Assembly: GCA_035084275.1 (NCBI GenBank) | Contig: CM068747.1 | Span: 23,188,001-23,252,000 of the forward strand | Reading direction: 5' to 3' | DNA from: Hydrolagus colliei | Taxonomy: Eukaryota | Length of the DNA: 64,000 bases | Shown: one piece after another, positions 5,940 to 27,000 of the stretch | Position numbering within the stretch: position 1 is the first letter of the stretch | How the letters are laid out: every line of letters begins with the position of its first letter | Position numbers and translations under genes: made by a program | The notes under the pieces: model-generated | What the model was told of the DNA's origin: nothing | Databases searched by the model: none | Seen by the model: the letters and a program-made list of their open reading frames with translations, nothing else

Positions 5940-6934
5940 GAAATTTTAAACATTAAGATGGACCGACTGACAAACCATCAGATCACAGAATCGGTGGCGT
6001 GCGATCGATATTCACAGGAAACTACTGAGCATCTCTGTTCTTGGACAGAGGGCAGCACGGTGACTGACGGAGTCCCGCAAACTGAACTTTTAGTAGACGA
6101 AACCCTATCGGTGGAAGAATATGAATGCATGTCACCAGACGACATATCTTTGCCTCCGCTTCCTGAGACTCCGGAATCGAACATGCTCCATTCTGAAACC
6201 GAACTGGATGAGGTGTCCCAATTAAGTTCTCATAGTCGGCATTTTGGATCTCACAGTGCAAAGCCACAAATGGAAATGGACTGGAGCAGAATGACTGATC
6301 GCTCTGATCCAGTAACACCTGTTGCCACGGCTGACACCATAAATCATTCAAGACCGCAAGCTTCTCATGAGCCTGACTATTATTCATCCCGCTATTCAAC
6401 TCCCTGCACCGGACCCTCCCCCGCGTACAGATCTGAGCCTTCCTCTTTTATCCAGCACCCACTGACCATCCCTGCACCCACTCTCGTTTCCAGCACCCTT
6501 TTGAATATCGCGGCATCCCAAACCGTGACTAAATCCTCAACCCGTGATGCTATCTGTCGAGTGCATGAGACTCAGCTGCAGACCTACGATGTGCATGAGA
6601 GTGCGATTGAGACCCAGCAGTCACTACTGCATGAATCCAAGAGTGACCGGTTTGCAAACCAAACGGATTCTAACAGCAATGAATTCCATGTTTCAACTGA
6701 ATCACTAACAGCACCCCTCGGTGTGCGCCCACCCATGCATGACACCGCAGGCCACCACAGAGAAACCATCATCCGGGAGGGCATTCGAGATCCATTGAAC
6801 TACACAGCTGTGCGCTGCCTGACTGGCACAACACCAAGCTTCTCCAAGCTCTTATCTAATGTCAATGTGGTAGAAGGTTCTCCTGTGACCTTGGAAATAG
6901 AAGTAGCAGGATTCCCAGAACCAACTTTGACGTG
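5940..6934 (+). CDS. CCDC141: CCDC141 large exon: low-complexity region plus N-terminal half of the Ig I-set domain
   Basis: ttttcaag|GAA acceptor; EEYECMSPDDISLPPLPETPES and PSFSKLLSNVNVVEGSPVTLEIEVAGFPEPTLTW are CCDC141-like motifs; TG|gtgggt phase-2 donor. Confidence 0.88.
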
Positions 6935-8288
6935 GTGGGTAGCCTATAACAAGCAGCAGTAATATCTACATTGCATTCAGTTGGAGGTTCAGCATGAACT
7001 TCTGACAATGGGGCCTGATTTTATTTTCAACTTTGTTCCATTTCACGATGCAATTGCGAACCAAATCGCTTTGCTTTGTAAACATTGGTATTTTCTGTTT
7101 CTGAAGCCAATGTAACAAAAATGATGTCCAAATTAGGTGCAACCGTAAGCTAAACTACAAACCAGGAAATTATCCATACATCATAAGTAAAGTGGAGGAT
7201 GGATAATTTAGACTTATAAAAAAGAAACCCATACATAAGAAAAGTAATATTAATACCACGATAGACATTCACCAAAAATGCACGATACGTTACAGTAAAT
7301 CCTGTAAACCGCTTTGCGATATTTTAGCTGCGTAATTAGATACAATATTGAATGAAGGAGTAATAGAATTATTATATCATGAAGTCATTTCATAGAATAT
7401 ATTTTGCTGCAAAGGTGAATATATTATGTACATTGCACCACCGCCAAGTAATTCTCATAAATGATTCGCAGTCGTCGAATGGTAATTGTTTAGTTCAATG
7501 GCAACACACCACTTTCATGTTGTCTACAGTATGGATCAGGATTCATCCATGCAAAACCTTAAATTGACGGGAGAAAAATAACCATTACCATTCCAATGTT
7601 TCTGCCATCATTTCTCCTCATAGGGGAGAAAGGGTAAATCTGGGACCAACTTGGCAGCCTTCTCCCAAGTCGTACATTCCTATATTTCTAAGCAAATTTA
7701 AAATTCTTACTCGCAACAGATGACAATAACTTCACAAAAGTGATTCTTGGAATCTCATAATCCTTTAAGCTTCAATTTTTCATAACATTTGGACTTGCGT
7801 TAAGTCACTGAATTTGATATCACTGATTGTGCTCCGTTCACCGGTTTTGATGGGGGTTCGTGGTTTGAAGGAATACAAAGGTGAAGAAACATAACAATTA
7901 TAAAGAGATTTGGAGGCCCTGGAAGATTGAAGTAAACCTTTGCATGCTTTTGTCACACAGCTAGGAAACCAATGATAATTTTAGGATGAGAATGAATCCA
8001 TTATAAATCACCTCCATCTTCCAGAGGCACAATGAAAATATGAACCGCAAATCTTTGCAACTTTGAATATATTTCCAAAATCAGGTCCCGAGTTATCAGT
8101 TATTTAAGATTGTTACTAACACTTAACTTATTTTAGAGTTAGTTTGTCGTACTAAAAAATGTTACATACTTTGCTTATATGCAGTTAATATAAAATTCAT
8201 ATTCTGTCTTTTTAGATGTTCTTGTTTTAATCAGGTGTTTAACTGGTGTTTGTAACTGCTTGACTTGAAAATGCACTCTTTACTTCAG

Positions 8289-8595
8289 GTACAAGAATGG
8301 ACAGAAGCTGACAACAGATCAGCGCTTAGAAGTTTCACAAAAGGAAGGCAAACACATTATTTTCATTCAGAAGGTGTCTGATAAAGATTCAGGCATTTAT
8401 GTTGTACGAGCTATAAACTCTAGTGGCACTATCAGTTCCACTGCTATACTTCAAGTACAAGGTAAATGCAGTCTCGGATGTTTCCACACTGATCTTATAG
8501 ACTGGCTCACCTTTCCAGCCTGGCTGTGTATAGTGTGTGTTGGCTTGTTTCTAATGTATACATGTTTATTTAACTGTTATGTATCACTGTTTTGA
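8289..8595 (+). CDS. CCDC141: CCDC141 terminal exon: C-terminal half of the Ig domain plus hydrophobic tail
   Basis: cttcag|G completes Trp; YKNGQKL...DSGIYVVRAINSSG...LQVQGKC...YVSLF-stop; AATAAA at 8626-8631; internal phase-1 donor CAAG|gtaaat at 8461. Confidence 0.88.
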
Positions 8596-8625
8596 TTACA
8601 TTGATGTTTTTCACCTTGTACTAAA

Positions 8626-8631
8626 AATAAA
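8626..8631 (+). terminator. Polyadenylation signal for CCDC141
   Basis: AATAAA 30 nt after the TGA at 8593-8595. Confidence 0.55.
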
Positions 8632-10159
8632 GTTGGTACCTGTCCTTACCACAAGTAATATCACAATGCAATGTTTCAATGCACTACCTCTGCACTGCAA
8701 AATAGTTTTGAATGTTAACTTTTTTATCGAAAACTCCAAGTTTCACTGAAATGCTGGTAAATGTTAATAATGTAATTTAAAATATTGACTGTTATTTCTC
8801 AGTAAGATATCATAATATTCCAGTACCCATGCACAATATTAATGGAATTGTACTGTTAATAACACAATCAGTGACACTGATTAAAACCTTCACTGTATTC
8901 GTTCACATTCACAGTAGTGTTAGCACAAAAACTGAGCAATTTGACTTGACAAATTAATTTGCACACTTTCTGATATCCTTATCTGTTTGCAAAGAAACAT
9001 TTTTGAAACTATTTTTATGACGAGTTTAAACCTATCTATATATTTTAACATATGAAACATTTTTTCTGAGAATTTTTTTATCTTCCTGATACTGTTTGTG
9101 TGATATGTTTTGGAATAGATGCAATGGAAAATTATTAGGTGGAATTTTAGATGAATAGGTAGTGGAGTGTGTTAATGTTATTATGCACTGTGCACAGAGC
9201 AGCAGCAAATGTCCTGTGTTTTCCCCCAATCTGGTGATAGAGTATACATTTGCAATCTGATAGCAAGACAGTGGCTGAAGTCTGGGAACAAAAGAGAATG
9301 CCTGCACTCTCAGCCAATCTACCAGTCAGAAGGAAGGGAGTAAAATAAGAATTTACAATCAATGAAGGTTCAACATACTGTAAGTTATGACAAAGACTAT
9401 AGGGAAGTCATACAAAAAAGCATTTAAAGCAAATAAATTCTGAGGCTGCATTGACTAAAGTATACATCGGATCACCAATATACTGTAATTACATTTCAAT
9501 CTTCTATTAGGATGATGGAAAGGCTGTGTATCCCTAAAATGAATTGCATTTCCCCCTGCATATTTCCCTATACAGCTTTGCAATGCGTTGACAACACTTT
9601 TATCAACAATTTATTGGTGCACTTGTATTGGTTCCTGGTATTGTCACTGTTTTCCATTGTGTGCATTGTAGTATAATTCCTCACCTTTGGTTCCACTCAC
9701 TCTGAGACCAATGAAAATCCAATTTATTGAATCTGGCCTTCGATAGTGGAATGGTATCCAATTTAACGAAACTGACTAAGAGACACTGAAACATGCAGCG
9801 TTAACACAATGCACTTTCTACTCTGCTCGTTGCAATGAAAATACACTGGACACGCTGGCCTGTTTCGAGTCCGACTTACATGGAGGTTGGATCAAAGGTA
9901 GCTCACATTAAAAATCACTTCTGATGTTCATATTTTACAATTTAAATTAATTCCTACGTATGAAAGATGGCATGAATGCAGTTCCTCTCCCACATCAAAC
10001 AAAACAAGGCAAACTAAACAACATGCGATAAGCAGAGATTAACTTATGTTTTTTTTCTTATTTTTACATTTTGCTCTTGTAAATCAAAAAATTTAATTAA
10101 AATTAGGAGTATCTCCCTACGTCTCCCTACGTACATGTTCTACTGGTGCAGCAATATAT

Positions 10160-10370
10160 TATAGAATGTTACGGCACAGAAGGAGGCCATTCGGCCCATC
10201 GAGTCTGTACCGATTCTTTGACCGAGCAAGTCACTTTCATTAACCCCAATCACCAGCTTTCTCCTCATAACCCTGCAAACCTGTCTTCCCCAGATACCTA
10301 TCTAGTTCTCTGTTAAAAGCTGCTATCGAATCGGATCTCACTACCCTTTCAGGCAGATCATTCCTATGGG
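10160..10370 (-). mobile_element. CR1 LINE 3' tail fragment
   Basis: ATAGAA...CGGCACAGAAGGAGGCCATTCGGCCCATC is shared with the CR1 tail at 61335. Confidence 0.7.
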
Positions 10371-13300
10371 TTACCAGTGGTAACTTTATGGTCTATGGTG
10401 TCAGATGTCATCTGAAGGCAAGGCTCGTTTGTTTAATTCTGTTAACTCTGGTACAGCACATAACAAATAACAGTTCAGCTGACAACTACACCTGACATTT
10501 CTGTTGTAGCATTCCTGGATATCGTTTGTATAAAAATGCAGTTGGGTGCAGGGACAAAGAACAAAGAGAAAGCAAACTTTGCACAGCTTGACCTCTCAGC
10601 AAGAAATAATAGTGAGGTTATTCTCCTCAACGGAAGTGAATTGAGTTTCATCACACGGTGGTCATGCACACTGCTGATGCATCTGAGGAAACCACTTGCA
10701 TACAATGTTGACCCAATATTGATAAAGTAATCTTTGCATTTGATATAGCGCCTTATCATGTCTTCAAGACGTCTCAAAGTGCTTCACGGAATATATTATA
10801 AAGTGTAGTGACTCTGCAGTGAAATGAGATATTTTATCAAAGTGGCCTCTCTTAAAAAAAGGTGGAAACAGAAGAATATTTTGCTATTAGAATAATGCAG
10901 GAATGTAGTAATGTGACAGGAAAATGCCTTGCAAACTCAAATTTATGCAAACCTGGACAACCTAAATGAACGTGGATGTATTTGCTGCAAAAATATTCCT
11001 TCAAAAGTCAATCCAAAGTAAATGTTTACAGGGGTGGAGTTCATGCGCCTGAGGTGAGAAGCAATAGACTATATTACTAGTCTCAACAAATATACACATT
11101 GAGTGTATTGACCGGTAAAAAATCCAGAGTTGATTTTCATTGTATTAATGTGTCTCCTACTGGTTCAGATATAAAATAAACTTGAGATTATTCATTGTGT
11201 TACTAAGAACTATTATTTTTTTCTCAGATGAGTCTTGTTTCTGTGTAACATATACAATGTAAGGTCTTTGTGTGGCTTTTGTGTCAACATAACAACTGGA
11301 AATTTATAAAAATGATGCGCTAGTCATAATGATAGCTCCCTCACAACCTCACACTTACTCGCAGTATATTGCTCAGTTGGTTGTCCATTCTGCCAGTCAA
11401 ATATACCGGTAATTGATGTTTTTTCTTTAAATCATTGAGCAACAAAGCCAAGTTGCTAGGGTTCTTCAGTTGGGAGAGGACAACTCAGAGGAGACCACAT
11501 AGAAGGGTAGAAAATGTCAAATGAGATTGCAAAAATAAACCCAGATGAATCATTTAGGTTGTTTCAGGACAATAGAATAAGAGGACAAAGGTTCGGAGTT
11601 TTAAAGGATGATTTTAGGACAGATACCAGGAAGATTTTCTTTAGGCAGAATGTAATCAATAATAATAATAACAGTCCTTGCATTTGATATAGAACTTTAC
11701 ATGTCTTCTAGATGCCTCAAAGTACTTCACAGAATATGCTGTAAAGTGAATTGATTGTATATATATGGACAAAACGTGGCAGCCAATTGCACACAGCAGT
11801 GTCTCACAAACAGTTGTGGATTGAAGTGATCAATTTATTATTGGGGTTTCTTTGAGGGATTATTTTGAGGCTTGTGAACAGTGCCAATTGACTGGACTCT
11901 TGACTCATTTAAAAGGCAGCTCGTTTGAGGGAAGGTTGGTTGGTGTTTGGGAGGTATGAAATGGGATGGGCTGAAGTGATTTCTTTATCTATATCAATCT
12001 TGTTATCACACCATTTTCTGGTCTTTTGTTTGAGATTTCCTTCAGCTACAAAGGGCCAAACAATCTCTGCACTGCTTTTCTTGGTGAAAGATGGGTCCAG
12101 GGGGGTGAAGTGCTGTTCCAAATGCAACTGCTCTAATAATCATGGTCTTCTTCAGCCTCTAAAATCATGATACAGTCAGACATTTAATCAAAGCTGAGTC
12201 CAGCATTAAGCAGCAATAGCTCCAGCTCTATGCATACGTGAGCTACCTTACAATTGCTCACAAGCCCTAAAAACCACAACAGCTCAATCATGGTGATTTA
12301 ATTCCTGATTTAATCTTGGATGGATATTCAGATGAGACACTGAAATTAATTTCAGGGACTCTGAAATACGGAAGAGATTAGGGCATTGGGGGTGGGAGAG
12401 ACTAGAAATTAATACAACAAAAGAAGAACTTTTTTAAAAGAAGTTATAGAGATAAGGTATATTCCTGAAAAAAGGAGAATAGCAGAAGGCTGAGACAATA
12501 GTAGGTTAATTGAGGACATCGGTTGTAACAAAAAGGTGCAGAAGGATTTAAAGGACTCAGCGAATCAAAAAATAGTATGAAATAGAAGTCTTATTTAAGT
12601 CTTAATTATTTGAATAAGTATTAGAGAGGCGAAGAAGAAAATAGAAGGATAGGTGAAAGTAATAAGAGGAATAATTTTAAGCTGTGTAGAAAGTAAGGGA
12701 ACTTTAAATGCCCGTCTACTTATGGGAGCAAATTTGTGGTGATCATCAACAAATTCCTCCCAAAGGCTCTCGTGAATGAAAGCTGTGTACAAACTCTAGA
12801 TCTAATCAACAAGGAGTCTTTGGACAGTCTGAATTCTCTGGTTCTATAGGCTGAACAGAAATCAATTCACTTCACTGGCATTTTAGAATTCTTTTAATGT
12901 CCTCAACATCAGAGGGGCCTGAAATTCAATCAAAAGGTAACCCGGCAACTGGCCTAATAACATCCCTTCATTTATTCCACATAGTCAAAACACTACAGCT
13001 GGTATTAATGTCAAATAAATCCGCACAGATTCACGGGAGCATTTGCAAGTAGTGTAGAAGGAAATTGTAAGCTTCACTTTAAAATAAAGAGCTCGACATT
13101 CCTGTCATCTCAATTCCAGTGATCATCTAGACGTGCACAAATAGGGCTGATTGTTGAGAGATTGCATTAATAGATAATGTATTACTGTCGGTTTTCCAAA
13201 CCTTAGAAAATGTTTTCAGTTACAAGGCTGTGAAAAAGGCCAATTTAGTTTAATAAGGTCTACATAAAAGGTATTAGAGTGAAACATAGTACACCAGACA

Positions 13301-14688
13301 CCTCTAATTGAATTATTAATGCTATTTCATGAGTGATTTATTGAAGGATATTAAGGTATCACCAAAGCAGTCAGAAATCTTTGCCCCTGTATGAGAAATT
13401 AATACAGAACAGTCTTACAAAGACATAGCTACATTGGGCTGCATATTGGAGTGAAGAAGTCCCAAGTACATGGAAAGTACTCATTTTAGTACCAATTTGA
13501 TTGCTATTATTTTTGTGCAGGTTTATAGTCAATTTAATTATGCTACAGTCATGAATCTCTGAGAACATTTCTTTGTGAAATGAATTAATGGAGGAGGTAA
13601 TTGTATCATCAGGATTGTCGCTCTATTCACGTCAACAGTCACCAACAGCAGGCGCACACGCAAAGATGCCCTAGAGGATCACATTGCTCATTTCTCGTGA
13701 GCTCTGCAACCGGGCACCATATGGATGTATTAATAGTCGGAACTATATGCCGTTCCTATTTAGTATTCGCTGCCTATTGCATATATTTTATGCGGCTTAT
13801 GCATGCAACTCGTAGTTATTTGGTAAAAAAAAAACACTTATTGGGAAGTGACTTGCTGAAATTGTTCTGTTTGAAAACAAAGTCAATTCCAACACCGTAG
13901 AAGATTAAATGAATCACAAAATGATTGTGTAGAAGTGTATTGAATGGATCATGATAATTAAAACACACTGCATCTCTGTCAAGGGAAAAAAAAGAAACCA
14001 ACAACTTTGCTGTTCGCCGAGTGTGTTTTCACCATCGATTTCCCTATATAGTCTTGAGATATGGGCAAAGCCTGGTATTTGGAGTTGACGAACAAATCAG
14101 CCATGATCTAATAGAATGGCAGAACAGACTCAAGATATGAACGGCCTTCTTCTGTTCCTATATTCCTGTAGATAGAAGGCTTGAAAAATTAAAATTAAAA
14201 TCTAATTAAATAAAGAAATCTAAATTTAAAAAATGTAATTAAACAAACTCTCAGTTAGCTACCAATAGTATTAAAATTCCTTCAGAACCATCCCTGGAAT
14301 TAGCATTTTAACTCTCTACCAGCACAATCCTTTCAGTACAAGATATAGGCTATTGATAAACAGTGGATTGTATTGTGGTAAGTGTATTGCTAAATTGATC
14401 AAACTGGCAACTTTTTCCTCGGTTCTTCTTTATCTGAAACATTCAATTTTCTTTCCGTTATAGGAAACCCATCTGTGAAAATTAATCAGGAGTAATTTGC
14501 ATGGCCTTGTTTATTACAGTGGATGATTCTCTGCACGCTCTCTGTCTTTCTAATAAAGCATTTTATTCAAAAGAAGATCCTTGTTCGAGAAACTTTATTT
14601 CTAAAAATAACTCTCACTGCTAACCTCATTCCAGCATAATTACCCACAAAATGTATTTTTTTAAAAGAACAATGTCATTTATTTCTAG

Positions 14689-14843
14689 TACAAGACAAGG
14701 TGCCTGACTTTGAAAAGAGATTTGCTGATTGTGTTTTGATGCAAGGGGATGATCTGATACTCCAGTGTATTATATCAGGACAACCCAAGCCAAGTGTGAT
14801 GTGGTTTAAAGATTCCACAGTGCTGTCACCCAGAGATTCCAAT
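14689..14843 (+). CDS. Orphan Ig I-set domain, N-terminal half exon (between CCDC141 and TTN)
   Basis: atttctag| phase-1 acceptor and AAT|gtgaga donor; VQDKVPDFEKRFADCVLMQGDDLILQCIISGQPKPSVMWFKD has the P-F, C..SG.P.P.V.WFK I-set signature. Confidence 0.8.
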
Positions 14844-14965
14844 GTGAGAATCACTTCCTTATATTTTTTGCTCCATTTGCACACTCATTTCGTTAGATAA
14901 TTCAGGTGTAATCTGTTTAGTCCTGCAGCCATTACTGAACGAGTGCAATGTGTTGTTTTGTTCAG

Positions 14966-15095
14966 GTAACAAGTTCAGGTGAAACGCATGTATTCAGGAA
15001 AAGAAACGTTGGCTCAGCTGATAGCGGCTTGTATCGTTGTATTGCCATAAACACAGAAGGTGAAGTGTGCTGCTCTGCTTCAGTAGTTGTTACAG
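14966..15095 (+). CDS. Orphan Ig I-set domain, C-terminal half exon
   Basis: ttttgttcag| phase-0 acceptor; VTSSGETHVFRKRNVGSADSGLYRCIAINTEGEVCCSASVVVT has the DSG.Y.C.A.N..G motif; ACAG|gtaatt phase-1 donor. Confidence 0.8.
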
Positions 15096-15649
15096 GTAAT
15101 TATGGAATGATTTAATACAATTTAAAAATGTTTGGATATTTCCTGCATTATGTACCACAGTGCTTATCATTAATCCAGTGATGATAACCAGATGACAATT
15201 ATGGATTCAAGATAAAATGCTAACATTCAGGTTTGCACAGAACTAGGAGGATGCTCATTTCTCAGACAGAAGGGTTGAAGATCAGATTGCGATTCAGTGA
15301 CAGTCTCTGGTGACTGGAGCGCTAAAGGTCGAAGCTAATCGTATTATTTCCAAGTAATCGACTGACAAACGTTCTCAATAAACTTACAACACAGAAATTC
15401 TTCAAGCCAAGCTGCTGAATGTGAATGTGTAGCAACTACATGAAGAAGCCTGGGGGAGAAAAAAAACTTCAGCTGAGAACATCAGCCATTATCAGCTCAA
15501 AAATAAACTGAATAATGCCACCTATTCCGGTTATGGTAATCATGGAATTAAATCAATTATAGCAGACAAGGGGGGCCTTTGCACTCTTCAAGACTATCTC
15601 TTCAAGATTGTGTAAGGCTCATCGATTGGGAGCTATCTAAACTAATACA

Positions 15650-16222
15650 ACAACAACATACACTTATATAGTGCCAACCGCACGGGTAGCGTCTCAGAGC
15701 ACTTAACAGTAATGGAGCCTGACTCCGAGTGGGTGGGGTAGGTGACCATAAGCATGGTCGAAAAGGAAGGTTTTCAGGAGGAATATGAAAAAGGGGAGAG
15801 AGGAGAAAAAGCGGCAGGATTGAGGTAGAGTGTTCCAGAGCTTTGGGGTGTAGTGGTTGGAAGCGCGACATCCAATTTTAAGCCCCCTCCCTGCTCTTTC
15901 TCTGCATTGTTATGTATTCTACATCTTCAAATCCTTATCCAATTCCCTTTTTCCACGATTATTATCCCCACCCTCTGGAACTCCATCCCACAGTCCCTTT
16001 GCCTCGCTTCCTCCCTTGTCTGCTTCAAGGCCGGTTTCAAGACCCTCCTCTTTGATCGTGCCTTCTGCTGCCCTCCCACTCTATCCCTCCCCATCTAACT
16101 CTCTCCCTCCCGTTCCCACTACCCTGTCCCTCCGCTTGCTTGGGTCCCGATCTGACTGTTCAGCACCTTGGGACGTTGTTCTGACATGAAAGGTGCTCTA
16201 GAAATATAATTTTGTTGTTGTA
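15650..16222. mobile_element. Back-to-back L2 3' end fragments
   Basis: A minus copy starting with (CAA)n, then a plus copy LWNSIPQSL...FKAGFKTLLF ending in (TTG)n. Confidence 0.65.
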
Positions 16223-17020
16223 TTATAAAGACAATCCCCCAAACATTCCAGAAAACAGAATCCAAATAGTGTATAATGAATACCTTAGAATTGGATTTGA
16301 TTTCCGACTGATTGTTACATCTACACTAATCTCTCTTCCACATTCATGACATCTAAAAAACATTAATTAGATGAGTCTCCTAATGATTTGACTGCCTCCC
16401 TATTGTTCTCTTGAGAAATGCAAGCAGAAAAGGTAGGCATTTTTCAAGTTGAAAAATGTAGGCGTGTATGAGTTTACACCGTTCAACCTTATCGTTGATT
16501 TGCAAGTGCTAAGCAATGTTTATTTCATTAGTTTGTCACCCTTAATATCATATAGCATCATCAGTACAGACATATATTGTCATAGTTAATACTTAGGTTT
16601 GTGTTAATATTTAAGTGGCAGTTTATGATGAATGATGCTGTAAAAATCCAATTTTCTCACAGAAAGCAGTAAAACAGTCTGCGAGCTTTCATGATGGGTA
16701 TAAAACACTTAACCTCTAATTCTATATTTTAAACCATTTACTTCAATCAAACTTCTCCTTGTTGAGGGCAAAGGGTATTTGACTTGTCATTTGAAATCAT
16801 ATCCTATAAGATAGGTTTGACACTAATATTTAATCATATTACCAACTAGACCATCAATGCAAAAACAACTACAGTATTATAATGGCTATTTTGTCTAAAT
16901 CCACAGAATTTAAAAAGATCCATATAAAACCAGTACAGCGTGAAAAATGCCTAATTGATGAATTTATACGCAATTTGGGGAAACATTTCTAATTCCACTT
17001 GATCTCAATTGCCATTTCAG

Positions 17021-17183
17021 AAAACACTAAAGGACAACTATGCACTTTTATCAAGGACACTGCTGAAAAAGGTCGTAAACATATGACAATGACAGTAACA
17101 ACTGAATCGGCTGCAAATCTGAAATGCCTTGCAGCAAGTTATATAAAAGGCCAAAGATCAGAGATTGGACAAGTTCAGTTGGG
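17021..17183 (+). CDS. Candidate linker exon (phase 1 to phase 2)
   Basis: gccatttcag| acceptor; stop-free ENTKGQLCTFIKD...EIGQVQL; GGG|gtaggt donor; phases bridge the orphan Ig to TTN exon 2; no recognisable domain. Confidence 0.4.
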
Positions 17184-18594
17184 GTAGGTTATTCAACGTC
17201 TATTTATGTGGCAGCTGATGCCTTTCAGTTTGTGTCACCATGGCACACATAGGACAATCCTTCAAAATGCACATAACCCTTTCATATCAGATTAAATGCA
17301 AAGATACTATAACAAAGTGAAGCAACACTGCATTGGAGTGTCAGTCAAGACTGTGCGCTACCAACTGAGCCATGCTGATCCCTTTACAGTATATACATAC
17401 GTTTCTCTCCTCTTTGACTATGCCTTCGGCCACGCTCCGACACTGCAGGCACTCCACTCTCCCTGATCCCAATCTCCCCCCATTCGGGTCCAAATTCCTG
17501 ACTGTCCAGTGCATTGTGACATCCTCCCGATGTGAAAGTTCTTATACAAATGTTATTTTGTATTGTGTGTGGGTGTATATATACATATATATATATGTAT
17601 ATACACAGTTCACTTTACAATATGTTTTGTGGAGCTCTTTGAGAGGTCTCAACATTGTGAAAAATTGGAGGGATTAGGCAAGGGTTGTTAGTACATGTAG
17701 TTTGAAATTGAAAATCTGAAATGTGAGGCGTTGAAGTATTCATTGTGGAACTACAGAGCACCCTGATGGGTTTACCTACATAAAATTCCTCATCTTAATT
17801 TTGCCTGGTAAAATCATCAACATCTCAGCTTTCGATTTGGTGTTAATAGATTTCGATTTGTTAGCAGAATTGTATTTTTATTGTAATGCAACATATAGTA
17901 ATTTTTTTTACTAATTTGATTAAGATGTAGCTTGCAGAAGTATAATAAACAGTTTCTCATGAATAGTTTCTACTAATAAGTTGAAAGTAGTGTAGTTTTA
18001 TATCTCATTATATTTTAACAAGTTAACCTTCAAATCAACCAAAGCAATTGGCCCCTCATTACGTTTCAGTCCACTTTTACAATGAGATAGAATTACACAT
18101 CATTATATCTTATGCCCCTTTGAATATGTTGAGCGTCTTTGACTACTTACAAATACAAAAAGAAACAATTGTGGAATCCCCCACAAAAAATATTTCTGTA
18201 GTTTGGAGTTTCTCTATATTTGGAAACATTTGAATTAGATTTGCTCTTTTGTAAATAGAAGAGTTTTGCGTTTGGTTTGGTGATTGGCACATACAGTTGC
18301 TGGTGTCCATGTGTCAGAGGAGCAAAATGGTCTTGAAATTGATTGACAGCGACAGATAGGACTTGTGCATTCAAATGCGCCCTGTTGCTAAGGGCTTCAT
18401 TCTTTCCTTATCAGTTTTGGTGATAACAAGAATATAGTAAGAATACAGTAAGAACCGACCAAGGAAAGGGTCTCAGATACATAGTCTGTTGTTACTTGAA
18501 CTGAACTTAGTCATCGTGAGCAAGGTGATGGAATAGAACTAACCCTCAGAACTTAATGCGACAAAATTAGCACTGTCTGCATAAAAGTGAAGTG

Positions 18595-18740
18595 ACTGAC
18601 AGCTGTTGGGTTCCATATAACGGATCCCTTTCCCATGAAGCCTTCACGGAGTACCCAATCAGAGGTCTTGGGGTAATCATGCTGCATAATTATCAGTAGA
18701 GCTGTGGTATAAAAGGTAAAACGACCATGTTAGCAATTCT
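18595..18740 (+). promoter_or_regulatory. TTN: Titin core promoter
   Basis: TATAAAA at 18708-18714 about 27 nt before the conserved exon 1 start; E-box CAGCTG at 18600-18605. Confidence 0.75.
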
Positions 18741-18957
18741 GAGCGGTTCAGGCACTCCCAGCCTTGCCTCGGGTGTAGGGATTGCATAGGAAAATTAAAA
18801 CTACACCCAGACCACAGCCTGCGTGTAGTTTTGTTTCCTTTTAGTAAGAAGTATACCCATTCTCTCGGTGGATTGTTGAAAAATATCTGGATAAGGAGGC
18901 AGTTTCCAAACCTATATTCCATAGGGCTTGGCCCATTTACTTAGGCACTCTTGAAAG
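18741..18957 (+). other. TTN: TTN exon 1 (non-coding 5'UTR)
   Basis: CCCAGCCTTGCCTCGGGTGTAGGGATTGCATAG...AAAACTACAC...GTGTAGTTTTG...TTAGGCACTCTTGA closely resembles the mammalian TTN 5'UTR as recalled; AAG|gtcagt donor; start position approximate. Confidence 0.85.
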
Positions 18958-19049
18958 GTCAGTAAATTTCTGTTTCTTACAAAGTGGCGTTTTGTTCCTC
19001 TTGGTTCTTTGTTTAATTGAAGTTTTTTTTTAAGACAAGTTTTTAAGTT

Positions 19050-19580
19050 GTATCATATTCCCTCAAGTATAAGTGCCTCGGGAGCAGGAAAAGTGAATTT
19101 GAAATATACATTTTTAAACTTTGATCACTTAATTCACACGTTAGTCGGTCTTTTGTGTATGAAATTCATCATTGGACAACGATCAGTGTTGAAATATTTG
19201 GAAACAAACTCTGTTTGGGAAAATAGCTAGAAAATAGCTGTTTAATTAAATGAGGGAAGCCTAAAAGACAACTGTAACTTTTAAAATTTTCAAGGTTAGG
19301 CTATGGATGGATGAATTGAGGACTGCTAAAAATAGTGCTGATGATATGCATGTGGCATCAGTCAGGCAGTGATGACTTTTTAAGGGAATCAGTGTATGAG
19401 CTATTATTTGTACCACCAGCTATGTGGCACTTGTCCTCTGTCAATCATTGACATTTGGCTAAATTTAAACCCCAGCTCTTCAACCCCAAACCAGCTGATC
19501 ATCGCTTATACAGACACCATGGTTCAGATTTAGAAAATGTTGCAAGCTCACTTACATTCCAATAAAGAACTACAAGTGGT
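19050..19580. promoter_or_regulatory. Putative muscle enhancer in TTN intron 1
   Basis: Perfect MEF2 site CTAAAAATAG 19326-19335; MEF2-like CTAAATTTAA 19459-19468; NKX2/E-box CACTTG 19428-19433 and CAAGTG 19573-19578; E-box CAGCTG 19492-19497. Confidence 0.55.
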
Positions 19581-20339
19581 GCAACATAAAGTTGTTTGTC
19601 AAAGTTACTGGATTGTTGGCATTGTATATATATATATATAATACCAATATATATATATTGGTATTTCATTGAACATAATATTTGCTATATCCTTTTTTTA
19701 ATTGTGCAATTTAATTTAAATAAATGATTTATTTCTGATTTGATTTGAAAGATATTTTTCTGTTTCTTTCCTGAAAATACATTGATCAGAAAAATATCAA
19801 GCACTTATTAACACCTTTGCCTGCATTTGGACAACAAATATGATCTGTGATCATAGCAGGGCCAATCTGAAGTCATAATAATCATTGCATTGGATATAAA
19901 ACCTTTATCATGTTATTGAGACAGGTCAAAGCGCCTCACAGGATATGCTGTAAAGTTGTGTAACTGTGTGTATTTTGTAGGCAAAGTAGAAATGTTACGT
20001 ATCACAAGTTTGTTTTATCTCTTTTTATAACGTCCAAAGCTTTTCAGTATCACCTGTTTTAATAGAACTGTGTCACAAACAGCTCGAATTACGTCCCATA
20101 AGTATCTATGGGGTTTATCCACACGCTAATGACTCACACCACAACTCCATCTCACATTACATAGCTCTGTCATAAGATAAAGAATAAAAGAAGAACATAA
20201 CACATGGAAATATCAAGATTAAATCTTCTTCAATATGAGGGCGAACTGCACACAATTTTAATGTTTCCTCACTAGAAACAGCTCAAAGGGGAAGAACTAT
20301 TTTAAATCATTGCCGCTAGTCAGCCAAATGCTGTGATTT

Positions 20340-20820
20340 ATGTTGCTCGCATATTTACCCAGACCAGACTGTTTACCCCCATCTCACCAGTTTTGCCCGG
20401 GCTCCACTGGCTCCCCATCATCGAACAAATTGACTAAGATCCTCACACTCGTGTTCAAATACATTCACTACCTGGCACCTCCCTACCTGTATGACCTCCT
20501 CATTTCCCAATCCACCACCCGATGCCTCCGCTCAACTGGGACCAGTCTCCTACTTGTCCCTCGCACATTGCACTCCACCAATGGAGGTCGCGCTTTCAGC
20601 CAATATGCCCCCCAAACTGTGGAACACTCTCCCTCAATCCCACCGCCTTGCCTTCTCTCTCGCCTTTTTCAAGTCCTGCCTGTAAACCTTAGTTTTCAAA
20701 CACGCTTATGGTCACATTCATCTGCCTCCCCACCGGCTCACAATCAGGCTCCCTAACTTTTAAGTGCTGTGAGACGATACCTTGCGCGGAGGATGCTATA
20801 TAAGTGCAAGTTGTTGTTGT
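20340..20820 (+). mobile_element. L2 LINE 3' end
   Basis: KILTLVFKYIHYLAPPYL...RCLRS...GGRAFS...PKLWNTLP plus a GCTATATAAGTGCAAGTTGTTGTTG tail. Confidence 0.85.
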
Positions 20821-20990
20821 ATAAGGCACTTTTGTGAAGTTAACTACACTGGTATAAGAATCTTATTCATTTTATTCTTTTAGACAATTATTCTACACAA
20901 AACTCGCATGTATAGACAATACGTTTCACTAGTAGAAGTTCTTTGTAGTTAACCGACGAATTTCTGTTGTGTCTTAGAGTGCCTACCAAA

Positions 20991-21081
20991 ATGGCCACAC
21001 AAGCTCCGACTTTCATACAACCGCTTCAAAGCGTTGTGGCACTAGAGGGTAGTGCCGCAACCTTTGAAGCGCATGTTGCCG
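20991..21081 (+). CDS. TTN: TTN exon 2 coding part (Z1 N-half; exon starts at 20978)
   Basis: gtcttag|AGTGCCTACCAAAATG; 91 coding nt; GCCG|gtaagt. Confidence 0.95.
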
Positions 21082-24000
21082 GTAAGTTATCAAATAACAT
21101 TTGTTGCATTTGATTCTTAACTGTTAAATAATAATCCTGTAGATCCGGTGTGAAATAAATAGCTTGTCGAAGGCTACAAAAATGTTTAATCTTACAGATT
21201 ACATCCATTTGTCTGTCTGCCTGCCTCTACATCTATCTCTATCTCTAATCGATTTGTCTCTTTATTGTCTATAACTTGATTTTCGCAAGTAATCCGATCA
21301 CATTTATTCACATTCGGATCTATTTGCGTAGTTGTGGTGTGTGTGTGTGTGAGAGTGTGTGCGTAAGATGCTCCTGGTATATTTGCTGGGATTGTGTAGT
21401 TGACATCGCTGTTGCCTGACTGTCTGCAGGTCAGCCGGTTCCAGAGGTGAGTTGGTTCAGAGACGGCCAGGTCCTGTCCGCAGCCACCCTGCCAGGCGCC
21501 CAGATCTCCTTCAGCAGCGGCCGCGCAATGCTGACGATTTCTGGATTGAAGCCTGTGCACAGCGGCAGATTCTCTGTGCGAGCCACCAATGGATCAGGTC
21601 AAGCAACAAGTACAGCAGAGCTGCTGGTCACAGGTAACAACAGCATGGCTCCTGAGATACTCTCCGGGGTCTGTGTGTCTGTGTGTGTATGTGTGTGTGG
21701 AGGGGAGTCAGGGTGGAGTTAAAGAGGTCTGGGAGGAAGGATTGTTAGTCAAAACATTTGGGAGCTTCAGTGAAAGAGTTTTACATAGATAAATAGGCAT
21801 ACAAACAGGGGTGGGCTATTCAGCCACTCAAGCCTGCTGCTCCGCCATTTTATAAGATCATGGCTGATCTGTACATCAAGTCCAGTCACCTTCCCTTGCA
21901 CCGTAACACTAAATACCCTGACCTAACAAATATCTATCCCCCTCCATCTTGAAAATGTGAATGGATCCAACATCCACAGCCATTTGGGGGAGAGAGAATT
22001 GTAGATTTGCACTACCCTTTGACTAACTAAGTTTTGACTAACTTTACCAGATGTACTCACCATAACCAGGCTGCTTACTATGGGCTTTGATGCCAGTTAT
22101 ACAGTATTTGGAGTCTCACTGACTCGTTGCTTATTTTCTCAGTTTGAACTTACAAAGGAATAAGGTCAGCAAATGGGCTGAGAATTTTTTGACCAGTTGA
22201 GGTCACCTGTGAGTTAGCATTACTGTATAATAAATTTCAATACCGAAATAAGAAAGAAAGTAGGAAAGAAAACTGTCCACATTTCACACAAGTTAACCAC
22301 ATTAACTGTCACACACGGGTTGGCCTGAACTGCCTGTTTTATGAACAGATAAACAGAGGATTAAATGCAAGATATTGTAGTTATGAATACAATAAACATT
22401 GCACCAAAACCTTTTTTTTTGCTTTCCTCCTGCAGCGGAAACTGCACCTCCAAACTTTACACTAAGACTACAAAGTATGACAGTAAAACAAGGATCCAAA
22501 GTGAGACTGGATGTACGAGTCACTGGAATCCCTACACCTGTGGTTAAGTTTTACAGGGAAGGAGCAGAAATCCAGAGTTCACCAGACTTCCAAATTGCCC
22601 AAGACGCTGACCTATACAGCTTAATTATAGCCGAAATTTACCGTGAAGATTCTGGAACCTTCTCTGTAACAGCCACAAATAACGTTGGACGCGCCACTTC
22701 CACGGCAGAGCTACTCGTCCAAGGTGAGTTCCGTTTATAATAATAATCCTTACATTTATATAGCGCTTTCCACATCTTATCGACTTCTCAAAGCGCTTCA
22801 CAGAATACAACAATGTCCCAAGGTTGGGACCAGAGCAGGTGGGGAGGGAGTAGAAATGAGGGAAGAAAAAAGGGAAAAGAGGTAGGGACCAGAGCAGGGG
22901 GGGAGGGGTAGTAGTTGGGGGAAGGAAAGTAGAAAAATTGACTATATTTGTGGGAGAAACGTGGCAGCCAAATTGCACACAACAGTCGTGGAAGTGGGGT
23001 TTGGGAAAAAAGGGGGAAAAGAGGGTAATGGGAGGGGCCGGGGTAGGGGGAAGGAGAGCAGAAAAACCGACTGTATATTTGTTTGCGTTGCTTTGAGTCG
23101 GTCACAGCAATATCGTGTCATGGTTCAAAACCTCTCCCAACTCATCCTGTGTTGCATTTGTTTCTAAGCAGCCGATGATGAAATTGTACCCGCCAAAAAG
23201 ACAAAGACAATCGTATCTACTGCTCACATTTCCGAGGCGAGACAATCCCGAATTGAAAAGGTACGTTACCTTCCGGTATTCCTCACGGGAATGAATAATG
23301 CGACTGTTCCACTTTGTTCTAATTTGAATGGAGAGGGTGACTCCATTTTGTTTTAACCATTCCATTGTATTTCAGAAAATGGAAGCTCGCTATGAAGAAA
23401 AATCTTCTGGTACAGTTGAAATGATGGTTGAGGGCAAGTTGATGGTGCAACATTTGCACCATAAGACCCCTCCACGTGTCCCACCAAAGCCCACGTCCCT
23501 GTCCCCCACACCCACAGTTGGCAAAGTGCAAGCCACCCGCCAGCAATCTCCATCGCCGGTTCGCCATGTCAGAGCACCAGGACCTTCACCGGTTCGGTAA
23601 GGAATTGCAAATAAATGATCCTTGCAGTTGATATAGCACTGTATCATAATAATAATCCCTGCATTTGATAAGAGTGCCTTAACAGGCCTTGGACAAGGCT
23701 CAAAGCCCTTCTCAGAATATACTGTAAAGTGAATTGACTCTATGGTTTGTGGACAAAAGACGGCTGCTAATTGCAAGTGTCTTTGAGACCTCTCAAAGGC
23801 TTCACATGATATACTGTCATGTGTAGGGATTGGGTATTTATCAGAAGACCAAGGCAGCCAATTTGAGTACAATAATGTCCCAGAAACTGCTAAAGAGTGA
23901 ATAATTAATTTGATCTGAGAATGTGTTAGCTGGGAAACTGGGAGAAACTCCCTTCAAATACTGCCATGGGGTCTTTAACGTCCACCTGAACAGGCAAGTG

Positions 24001-27000
24001 GGCCTCGGTTTTACATTTCATCCAAAGGACGGCACCTCTGACACTGCAATGCTCTCCCAGCACTGCATTGGAATGTTAGTCTAGGTTATGAGTTCACACT
24101 AGACTCAATGCTTAGCCAAGGGATGAAAACTGCACTCCTCACTTGAGCCTCCTTTGGATTCTATTCCATGTTAGACACAGTTATGTGTGGAGCTCAATGA
24201 CTCAACTCTTTATTCCGGCCAAATCTTAAGGCCGATGGTGCCATCTGGTGGCTGTGAATGTTGTGACCAGTCCGCTCAATATGCCATAAAATTGAGAGGA
24301 CACTTTGGATATGCTCTAAATTTGAATCCAATTGTATTGTTTCTCTCCTCTTTGTCAATTGTGTCACTACTATTCGGGAAGTGCCAGCTCTGATGTTAAT
24401 AGTTTGTCTTCCAGATATGTTGGTAATTCACTTTGTGACCATTCAAATGGACTGCCGCAGATACCAAGTTCTACTTGGCAACAATTAATTTTGACGTGTA
24501 CATTTGTGTACATTACAGTGATTCTGTAAAATGCAAGAATTATTATTGTTCTATTGATGCAGAAAAGCAAACATTATTATTTGGTATTTCTTTGACGCAA
24601 TAACAGCAACAACAGCAGCGACAACTTGCATTTGTATTGCGCCCCCTTCACGCAGGACGGTGTCTCAGAACAGTTCAACGTCAGCAATTGATGCATATGA
24701 TTGACAGTTTTACTTGTTGATTGCGTCTTTGTTTCAGTCAATTCACTGTACAGTATATTTTGTGAAGCGCTTTGAGACGTCTAGAAGATGTTAAAAGCGC
24801 TATGCCAAATGCAAAGATTATTATTATATTATTAAAACAATTTATTTTTCTAGCTCTGTGTCTCCGGCTGGACGACTGTCCACCTCACCCATCAGATCCG
24901 TTAAATCTCCCCTCCTGACACGCAAATCTCAGACCATGACAGCCACCGCAGAATCCTTACCTCCTTGGAAGCAGGAAGATTACGTTTCCGCGAGCGAATT
25001 GAGGATGAGAGAAAGCAGGCTGTCCACCACAACCACAAGCAGCATTCACAGAGAAGAAAAGTGGGAGGGGAGATACGGTCTGCACGGTCAGACATTCATC
25101 ACCGGAATGGCTGGCTCTGGAGGAGGAATTGCCATCGCTGAAGGAGTTTCCATGGCTGCTGGTGCTGCTGGTGCTGCTGGTGCTGCTGGTGGTGCTGCTG
25201 GTGCTGCTGGTGCTGGTGCTGCTCGTATTGGTGGTGGTTTCAGTGCTACCAGCATTGGTGGTGGTGGTGGTGGTGGTGTCAGTGGCTTCAGTGCTACCAG
25301 CATTGGTGGTGGTGGTGGTGCTGTCAGTGACTTCAGTGCTACCAGCATTGGTGGTGGTGGTGGTGGTGTCAGTGGCTTCAGTGCTACCAGCATTGGTGGT
25401 GGTTTCAGCGCAACCAGCATTGGTGGTGGTGGTGGTGGTGTCAGTGGCTTCAGTGCTACCAGCATTGGTGGTGGTGGTGGTGGTGCTGTCAGTGACTTCA
25501 GTGCTACCAGCATTGGTGGTGGTTTCAGCGCAACCAGCATTGGTGGCGGTGTCAGTGCTACCAGCATTAGCGGTGGCGGTGTCAGTGGTTTCAGTGTCAC
25601 CAGCATTGGTGGTGATGTTGGTGGTGTCAGTGCTGCCAGCATTGGTGGCCGTGTCAGTGCTACCAGCGTTGGTGGTGGTGCTGGTGCTGGTGGTGTCAGT
25701 AGTTTCAGTGCTGCCAGCATTGGTTCCTCTAGTGCTATCAGAACCACTACCGTGTCCATGGTTTCCGGAGGCATCCGAACGACCGAAGTATCTGGCGCTG
25801 CCAAGGCTGCCGGGCTTTCCGCAGCGGCGGGAGGCGCCCGAGTTGCTGGAGTCACCATCGTCGATGGAGCTGCTGGAGCCACTGAAATCTCCCGAATTTC
25901 CGGTTCTGGTGCTGCTGTTGGCACTGTGGTTGTCGGCACCGCGGTTGCCGGCAAAGAGGTGAGGACCTTTTTTTTCCCCTATTGTTGTTGTTGCATTTTC
26001 ATCAAAGCATGACCCAGCTCTGACCAGCAAAATTAGAGATTTATTTTAAATTTTATTTTAGGTGATTCAGCTAAATTCTAACCCGGTTTTATTCTGAGTC
26101 TTTGGGCACAGGTGTAATGGGACGGATTCATTTCCAAGCCATGTTAAAGATGGATTCAAACGGATCAATTCAAGATTAAACCCGAACCCTGCTTGAGTGT
26201 GTTTAGCGAAACACGTTTATATTAGTAGTTGAGACTTGAGAGTGGCAAATGATTTGGATTGTTCCTTTAATGTGTATGTATGTACTTGCATCTGCATTTT
26301 GGAAATCACCCGTATGCCTTCATTCGAAAGTGAATACAAACATTTTGAATGTGGGAGGCAGCCTAGAGACTGTTTAATGTTTAGCTACGTGACCTACGTA
26401 TATGCAAAATCAATCTATTTTGCTGTGAAAACCAATTCAGACACAGCATGACCTAGAGAAAACAACAGCTTTAGCTACTGTACTTGCTGCCGTTGAGCAA
26501 GCCAGAGTAAGAGCGCCTGTGATTGCTGCAACCGACGCAGAAAGACGTATCACAGAGAAAGACAAGTCTACAGAACAAGCACAACTATTTCAGGATCAGG
26601 TAGTCTGAACACTCACAACTCATTTTAACTGGCAACTTTCTTTGACCCACGAACCCAGACTTGTAATTTATTTCACAGTCACGTTCACGCAGGGAGCTTT
26701 GATAGCTATCACATCCTTAAACCACCTAGTTTCACCAGTACACTCCTATCCATTGAGAGTGATTTTTGCATGCAGTTGTTGTGCTATTTTAGACTATTTT
26801 GCACAAAAATATCTATTGGAGAGTCAAATGTATTTCTGTGTATTGTGCATTTTGCTGCCAAAAGCAATACCAATTTTTTATATATCTCTTTATTTTTTTA
26901 TTGGAAATGTGGCCCCGAAATCCTCAAACTTTCTTTTATTTTAAAAACTGTTTAGAAACCATGTTTTGGATTGGTAATTTTGCCAACTTTTTACCACAAC

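Follow-up and report, generated by a model that had tools for sequence, protein, structure and literature searches.

A second immunoglobulin domain between CCDC141 and titin in Hydrolagus colliei, best read as part of a CCDC141 isoform without the membrane anchor

The gene for CCDC141 lies directly upstream of the titin gene (TTN) in vertebrates, and its history has been tied to that of titin. SESTD1, CCDC141 and titin are proposed to descend from one gene, ‘connectitin’, which is still single in cnidarians and placozoans; Zormin of Drosophila, with four spectrin repeats and several immunoglobulin (Ig) domains, is equated with CCDC141; and transcripts spanning the boundary between the genes are cited as CCDC141-TTN (Labeit 2006) and Zormin-Sls (Burkart 2007) (PMC12198301). 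The CCDC141 and titin genes are also described as sharing an overlapping transcriptional unit with joint transcripts, again citing Labeit 2006, and CCDC141 has recently been shown to bind titin and nesprin-1 (PMC12657953). The ancestral single gene, Zormin as the counterpart of CCDC141 and the CCDC141-TTN transcripts are already published in them, and the background on which an earlier sequence-only reading of the present locus drew (Zormin and sallimus, CCDC141 directly upstream of titin) is likewise in print. The locus is a window of 64,000 nucleotides from Hydrolagus colliei (assembly GCA_035084275.1, contig CM068747.1, forward-strand positions 23,188,001 to 23,252,000), in which an intact Ig domain stands between the end of CCDC141 and the start of titin.

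Mammalian CCDC141 has forms with and without a transmembrane (TM) domain, which is found in isoform 2 (PMC12657953). The window would resemble this arrangement, in that one gene directly upstream of titin gives both a form anchored by a TM segment (Ig plus TM) and another that lacks it. The TM-less forms would differ, in that mammalian isoform 1 ends after exon 23, without the TM domain and with its Ig incomplete, whereas the form in the window would keep its first Ig domain (Ig1) whole and add a second (Ig2). No second Ig is mentioned for the mammalian isoforms in the available excerpt of PMC12657953, and a literature search, supplementary files being outside it, found no paper linking CCDC141 to a ‘second Ig domain’ or ‘two Ig domains’. 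Drosophila sallimus/Zormin also has a spectrin-repeat, multi-Ig protein encoded just upstream of, and linked with, a titin-like gene (PMC12198301), and a two-Ig CCDC141 would be one step closer to the Zormin layout; a single gene is described as giving both Zormin and D-titin as isoforms, however, whereas titin in the window has its own TATA-like box and first exon. The human joint transcripts of FLJ39502 (CCDC141) and TTN, known here through PMC12198301 and PMC12657953, span the CCDC141-titin boundary in the same orientation as the genes of the window. Connectitin, described as a single gene of non-bilaterians that joins SESTD1-, CCDC141- and titin-like parts (PMC12198301), matches the idea of the sequence-only reading of an ancestral single gene, a relic of which may survive here as a protein running from CCDC141 into titin; in the window, by contrast, the evidence favours separate genes.

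The second Ig domain and its sardine counterpart

Ig2 is encoded by two exons, A and B (Table 1), and all searches were run exon by exon. Exon A matches positions 1-44 of the Pfam I-set profile (PF07679) with 35.8 bits and exon B the complementary positions 50-90 with 24.4 bits, where the curated cut-off is 23.7 bits; the two exons are complementary halves of one I-set domain, more than chance would give, and the intact Ig domain that the sequence-only reading had described from these exons is borne out. The core of an I-set domain consists of a cysteine in strand B, a tryptophan in strand C and the motif D-x-G-x-Y-x-C in strand F. All of these are present in the exon translations. The open frame of exon A has no ATG ahead of the domain, so an upstream exon is required. 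The domain lies on the same strand as CCDC141 Ig1 and 3′ of it, 5′ of the TATA-like box and exon 1 of titin; the donor at 8461 and the acceptor at 14689 are both phase 1, and the codon formed at their junction is not a stop.

The counterpart of Ig2 is found in a ‘coiled-coil domain-containing protein 141-like’ of the sardine Sardina pilchardus (XP_062389611.1, P0173 in the comparison set). This is a computed RefSeq model of 525 residues, laid out as a disordered region, Ig1, one junction residue, Ig2 and a tail of 41 residues that leads to the stop; a TM segment is absent. The comparison set comprised 194 proteins, of which 150 were giant multi-Ig proteins chosen because they matched exon A best. 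Among 2623 high-scoring segment pairs, the top match of exon A was to residues 395-440 of the sardine protein (48% identity, 50.1 bits), and among 1815 the top match of exon B was to residues 444-483 (50% identity, 41.6 bits, next best 37.4); the two matches are colinear and adjacent. In the reverse direction, sardine Ig2 reaches 50.4+41.6 bits on the two window exons (44-50% identity), as against 53.5 bits for the highest-scoring titin Ig in the window and 70.5 bits (36%) for the top scorer among the 193 other proteins. In these sequence comparisons the window and sardine Ig2 domains are each other's reciprocal best match. Window and sardine would share the residue at which Ig1 passes into Ig2, with ...LQVQ-V-QDKVPDF predicted for the former and ...LQVT-V-SGDSPHF read in the latter. 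Identity to the sardine is 48-50% in Ig2, close to the 57% of the second half of Ig1, as is expected of a part kept under selection. Like the isoform proposed for the window, the sardine protein passes from CCDC141 Ig1 directly into a second I-set Ig without a TM tail; in addition it has a 41-residue tail after Ig2, for which the window holds no match.

Other searches returned generic Ig matches or none. With HMMER, exon A was compared with 1.84 billion representatives; the best 150 listed, in order of summed score, consisted of giant multi-Ig proteins only, with ∼33% identity per stretch, and were uninformative on orthologues. A word-index search with the exon A open frame gave no candidate, but the control search with the frame of the last CCDC141 exon was equally blank, which leaves that negative uninformative. 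The solved-structure search of each exon found generic I-set matches (titin, Robo, DCC, contactin), and the Protein Atlas placed sardine Ig2 plus its tail in generic Ig clusters only. When the DNA of Ig2 and of a putative linker exon further downstream (Table 1) was compared with the window by blastn, only self matches were obtained, and no repeat family was found inside the window.

The Ig domain that the sequence-only reading treated as an orphan is probably the second Ig (I-set) domain of CCDC141, in an old alternative tail that would replace the membrane anchor. Ig2 is assigned to a TM-less CCDC141 isoform because of the top matches, the reverse scores, the shared join and an apparently conserved GGTAA at the end of Ig1, described below. 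The arrangement is best read as a TM-less two-Ig isoform common to Hydrolagus colliei and a teleost. The sequence shows an intact domain and compatible phases, and the Ig1-Ig2 join recurs in a teleost gene model; we infer that the join is actually made in this animal, and likewise where the isoform would end. Two outcomes would be open to the transcript at the last CCDC141 exon: (i) reading through it would add the hydrophobic membrane tail, with a stop at 8593; (ii) splicing at the internal phase-1 donor at 8461 would drop that tail and join Ig2, giving a soluble two-Ig isoform. The latter may end shortly after Ig2: either the unspliced frame of exon B runs on to its stop at 15113, or another 3′ exon is added, for which 17021-17187 is a candidate. 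Titin would begin from its own promoter ∼1.5 kb downstream, and if an RNA did read through into titin, two separate reading frames would be more likely in it than an in-frame fusion.

Several observations weigh against a two-Ig CCDC141. The margin of the exon A match is small, with a runner-up at 49.3 bits behind the 50.1 bits of the sardine protein. Ig2 is found in one of the seven homologues that extend past Ig1, and this one is a single computed RefSeq model; the search range of 218-693 residues hid full-length CCDC141, so that the frequency of Ig2 is read from shorter proteins only. The cat shark model, P0193, has neither a TM segment nor Ig2 after Ig1. The sardine tail is unmatched in the window, and the 3′ end given here to the isoform is a guess.

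The 3′ end of CCDC141

The large CCDC141 exon that encodes the first half of Ig1 was used in a homologue search that covered proteins of 218-693 residues, with full-length CCDC141 outside this range, and gave 44 homologues at E<=0.001, of which some carry the name CCDC141 in their source. The exon was also located by tblastn of P0173, P0174, P0190 and P0163 on the window. The second half of Ig1, on the last CCDC141 exon, is 79% identical to the cat shark protein P0193 and 57% identical to the sardine protein, compared with 41-45% for the other homologues. Only seven of the 44 homologues reach beyond the first half of Ig1: four of them carry a TM tail, a low-quality primate model carries an unrelated tail, the cat shark model yet another, and the sardine model has Ig2. 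The hydrophobic tail of the window aligns with the tails of P0172, P0174, P0186 and P0190. The stop of this tail is followed by an AATAAA; such hexamers (AATAAA or ATTAAA) are common locally, with 29 in 8401-21000 (12.6 kb).

The point at which the two tails would part is marked in the homologues. The residues after Ig1 are G-N in all five homologues that read through, and G-K in the window, which seems to fit a kept GGTAA; on this comparison the donor within the last CCDC141 exon (8459-8467) would be conserved as coding sequence. Two models depart from the others after Ig1, the sardine P0173 and the low-quality primate P0178 with its unrelated tail, and both diverge exactly at the GGTAA.

Other 3′ ends are seen among the homologues. 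The cat shark model (Scyliorhinus torazame GCB67613.1) continues after Ig1 in a 50-residue charged tail, residues 331-381, that is neither TM nor Ig2; either a third 3′ end or an error in the model could account for it. Neither the tail of P0173 nor that of P0193 gave a match when searched against the window (best E 0.19). A different ending lies upstream, at the donor of the large exon: 37 of the 44 homologues terminate by reading into the intron after the first half of Ig1 (6935-6959 in the window). In 31 of the 37 the residues W-V-A-Y-N precede the stop, and the window reads WVAYNKQQ and then a stop. Strong conservation of the first ∼15 intron bases across vertebrates would account for this, or else the true C-terminus of a truncated isoform lies here.

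Table 1. Features of the window from the 3′ end of CCDC141 to titin exon 3 (a slash marks the exon boundary)
Feature	Position	Strand	Remarks
Large CCDC141 coding exon	5940-6934	+	first half of Ig1 in its last ~35 codons (Pfam I-set 1-35); phase-2 donor GTGGGT at 6935
CCDC141 Ig1, second half	8289-8461	+	173 nucleotides; Pfam I-set 35-90; phase-1 donor G/GTAAAT within the last exon
Hydrophobic transmembrane-like tail of CCDC141	8462-8595	+	read-through past 8461; 44 residues; stop TGA 8593-8595
AATAAA	8626-8631	+	3′ of the stop of the TM tail
Ig2 exon A	14689-14843	+	155 nucleotides; phase-1 acceptor, phase-0 donor; first half of I-set
Ig2 exon B	14966-15095	+	130 nucleotides; phase-0 acceptor, phase-1 donor; second half of I-set
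Unspliced extension of exon B	15096-15115	+	six codons, then TAA 15113-15115; AATAAA at 15377 and 15502
Putative linker	17021-17183 (17187 with in-frame TAG 17185-17187)	+	163 nucleotides; chance open reading frame or possibly a terminal coding exon
TATA-like box 5′ of titin exon 1	18707-18714	+	read by eye
End of presumed non-coding titin exon 1	18940-18958	+	donor AAAG/GTCAGT
Titin exon 2	20978-21081	+	104 nucleotides; ATG at 20991; phase-1 donor
Titin exon 3	21430-21698	+	phase-1 acceptor; rest of Z1

From Ig2 towards titin

The sequence-only reading had traced a five-segment splice path from the second half of CCDC141 Ig1 through Ig2 and the linker into titin exon 2. As arithmetic the path holds throughout, in coordinates, splice dinucleotides, phases and the stop-free frame up to the titin ATG. 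Each of the five segments is preceded by AG and followed by GT and is open in the required frame; the donor phases run 1, 0, 1, 2, 1; the split codons G/TA, G/AA and GG/A, worked out by hand from the printed letters, include no stop; and the 13 nucleotides ahead of the titin ATG continue the frame without a stop. The phase-1 acceptors proposed as alternative entries, at titin exon 3 (21430) and exon 4 (22436), are also present in the sequence. An open frame across every CCDC141-TTN junction is nevertheless arithmetic only. Phase-1 Ig exons as a class fit each other in frame, and since this is a generic property the in-frame fit of the Ig exons on the path is weak evidence. What finds support in the path is its first two joins, from 8461 to 14689 and on to exon B, which the sardine CCDC141-like model matches; the link from there to titin finds none.

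Titin itself has what appears to be an ordinary beginning. The TATA-like box, the 18958 donor and the 20978 acceptor agree with the way titin usually starts, and the first two sit between the linker and titin exon 2. Without the linker, a splice from 15095 to 20978 is out of frame: it enters frame 2 of exon 2 and meets a stop inside that exon, and a read-through RNA of this kind would therefore carry two separate frames. Two long open frames rich in proline and serine, at 15829-16186 and 20337-20753, share short motifs (e.g. ...LWN.[IL]PQS...) and look like copies of one interspersed repeat family flanking the linker and the titin promoter. Inside early titin, at 24795-26009, there is a long glycine-rich frame with many repeat units.

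That the whole path (8461 to 14689, 14843 to 14966, 15095 to 17021 and 17183 to 20978) is spliced and translated as one CCDC141-Ig2-linker-titin protein is highly improbable. Beyond the stop-free, in-frame path, such a fusion can point to human transcripts spanning CCDC141 and TTN, which are reported (PMC12657953, PMC12198301), and to two properties of the linker that chance can also produce. The linker is one of 129 stop-free, phase-compatible candidates bounded by AG and GT (40-400 nucleotides, in 15097-20976), where shuffled sequence gives a mean of 113; on a crude splice score, taken from an approximate weight table rather than a published tool and used for ranking only, it comes first among them, but 14% of 200 shuffles contain a candidate at least as good. 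Its codon usage is exon-like, at 0.13 per codon (range 0.10-0.15), but values of at least 0.12 occur in 16 of 107 held-out null open reading frames, and the test has little power, in that even exons A and B, which are real, do not stand apart from the null. A Pfam search of the linker gave no match, and a Protein Atlas search gave no usable one (recognition 1386, below the 2300 reached by 91 of 100 known-family proteins). Short motifs of the linker and the sardine tail seemed colinear by eye, and the linker was considered as a counterpart of that tail, which is rejected on a Smith-Waterman score of 20 (p=0.40, 5000 shuffles). Of the five donors, that of the linker, GTAGGT, is weakest, and it shares bases with an in-frame TAG, which the frame meets one codon past the donor; an ATTAAA follows at 17291. 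The own TATA-like box and exon 1 of titin, between the linker and exon 2, also speak against a fusion. The linker is not more than chance and has no support as an exon: a segment without family, homologue or significant coding signal, with a stop directly after a weak donor, lends no support to the in-frame read-through protein proposed earlier. Were it an exon at all, a terminal CCDC141 exon would be as good a reading as a bridge, and the supposed bridge into titin is, most probably, a frame left open by chance. There is correspondingly very little probability that the two-Ig isoform is the surviving bridge of an ancestral connectitin, reading through 17021-17183 in frame to titin exon 2. If it were, Z1Z2 of titin would be preceded by spectrin repeats and by two additional Ig domains, in a vertebrate counterpart of Zormin/D-titin. 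A literature search, again with supplementary files outside it, found no paper on an in-frame CCDC141-titin protein.

Ig2 might instead belong to titin, an upstream alternative first exon or a CCDC141 read-through joining 15095 to TTN exon 3 or 4 and so altering the N-terminal Ig. The donor at 15095 and the acceptors at 21430 and 22436 are all phase 1, and titin chains are among the top solved-structure matches of Ig2; those matches are generic, however, with Robo, DCC and contactin scoring alike, the join to exon 3 would remove the first strands of Z1 and that to exon 4 all of Z1, and the homologous Ig of the sardine sits in a CCDC141-like protein that ends after Ig2. Membership of titin is accordingly very unlikely. 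Somewhat less unlikely, yet still improbable, is that Ig2 is a relic in this species, its exons open but no longer spliced into any mRNA, for which the cat shark model without Ig2 would speak. Both exons are open, however, with consensus splice sites and core Ig residues kept and 48-50% identity to a teleost after very long separation, and such features would not survive long without selection. A read-through RNA from CCDC141 to titin with two separate frames has a similarly small chance: Ig2 (or Ig1) would join exon 2, the CCDC141 frame would stop and titin would start from its own ATG. The behaviour of a phase-1 donor spliced onto 20978, with its stop in frame 2 of the exon, agrees with this, and such an RNA is compatible with the two-Ig isoform, but it would be a target of nonsense-mediated decay. 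The human FLJ39502-TTN RNA of Labeit et al. 2006 is said to hold two reading frames rather than an in-frame fusion, and their abstract reportedly calls it bi-cistronic. Joint transcripts of the two genes, as noted, are reported in PMC12657953.

What a two-Ig CCDC141 would mean

A TM-less, two-Ig CCDC141 would be a modest addition to the architecture of a known gene rather than something new in kind. The consequences of an in-frame CCDC141-titin protein would be much greater, but it finds no support here. If the two-Ig isoform is real, the donor that removes the membrane anchor would let the gene switch in a simple way from an anchored CCDC141 to a soluble one with two Ig domains. An Ig2 kept in Hydrolagus colliei and a teleost would add to CCDC141 a part that the available excerpts of PMC12657953 and PMC12198301 do not mention. 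The apparently stray domain ahead of titin would be explained, where it might otherwise pass for an upstream exon of that gene, and vertebrate CCDC141 would come closer to the multi-Ig Zormin.

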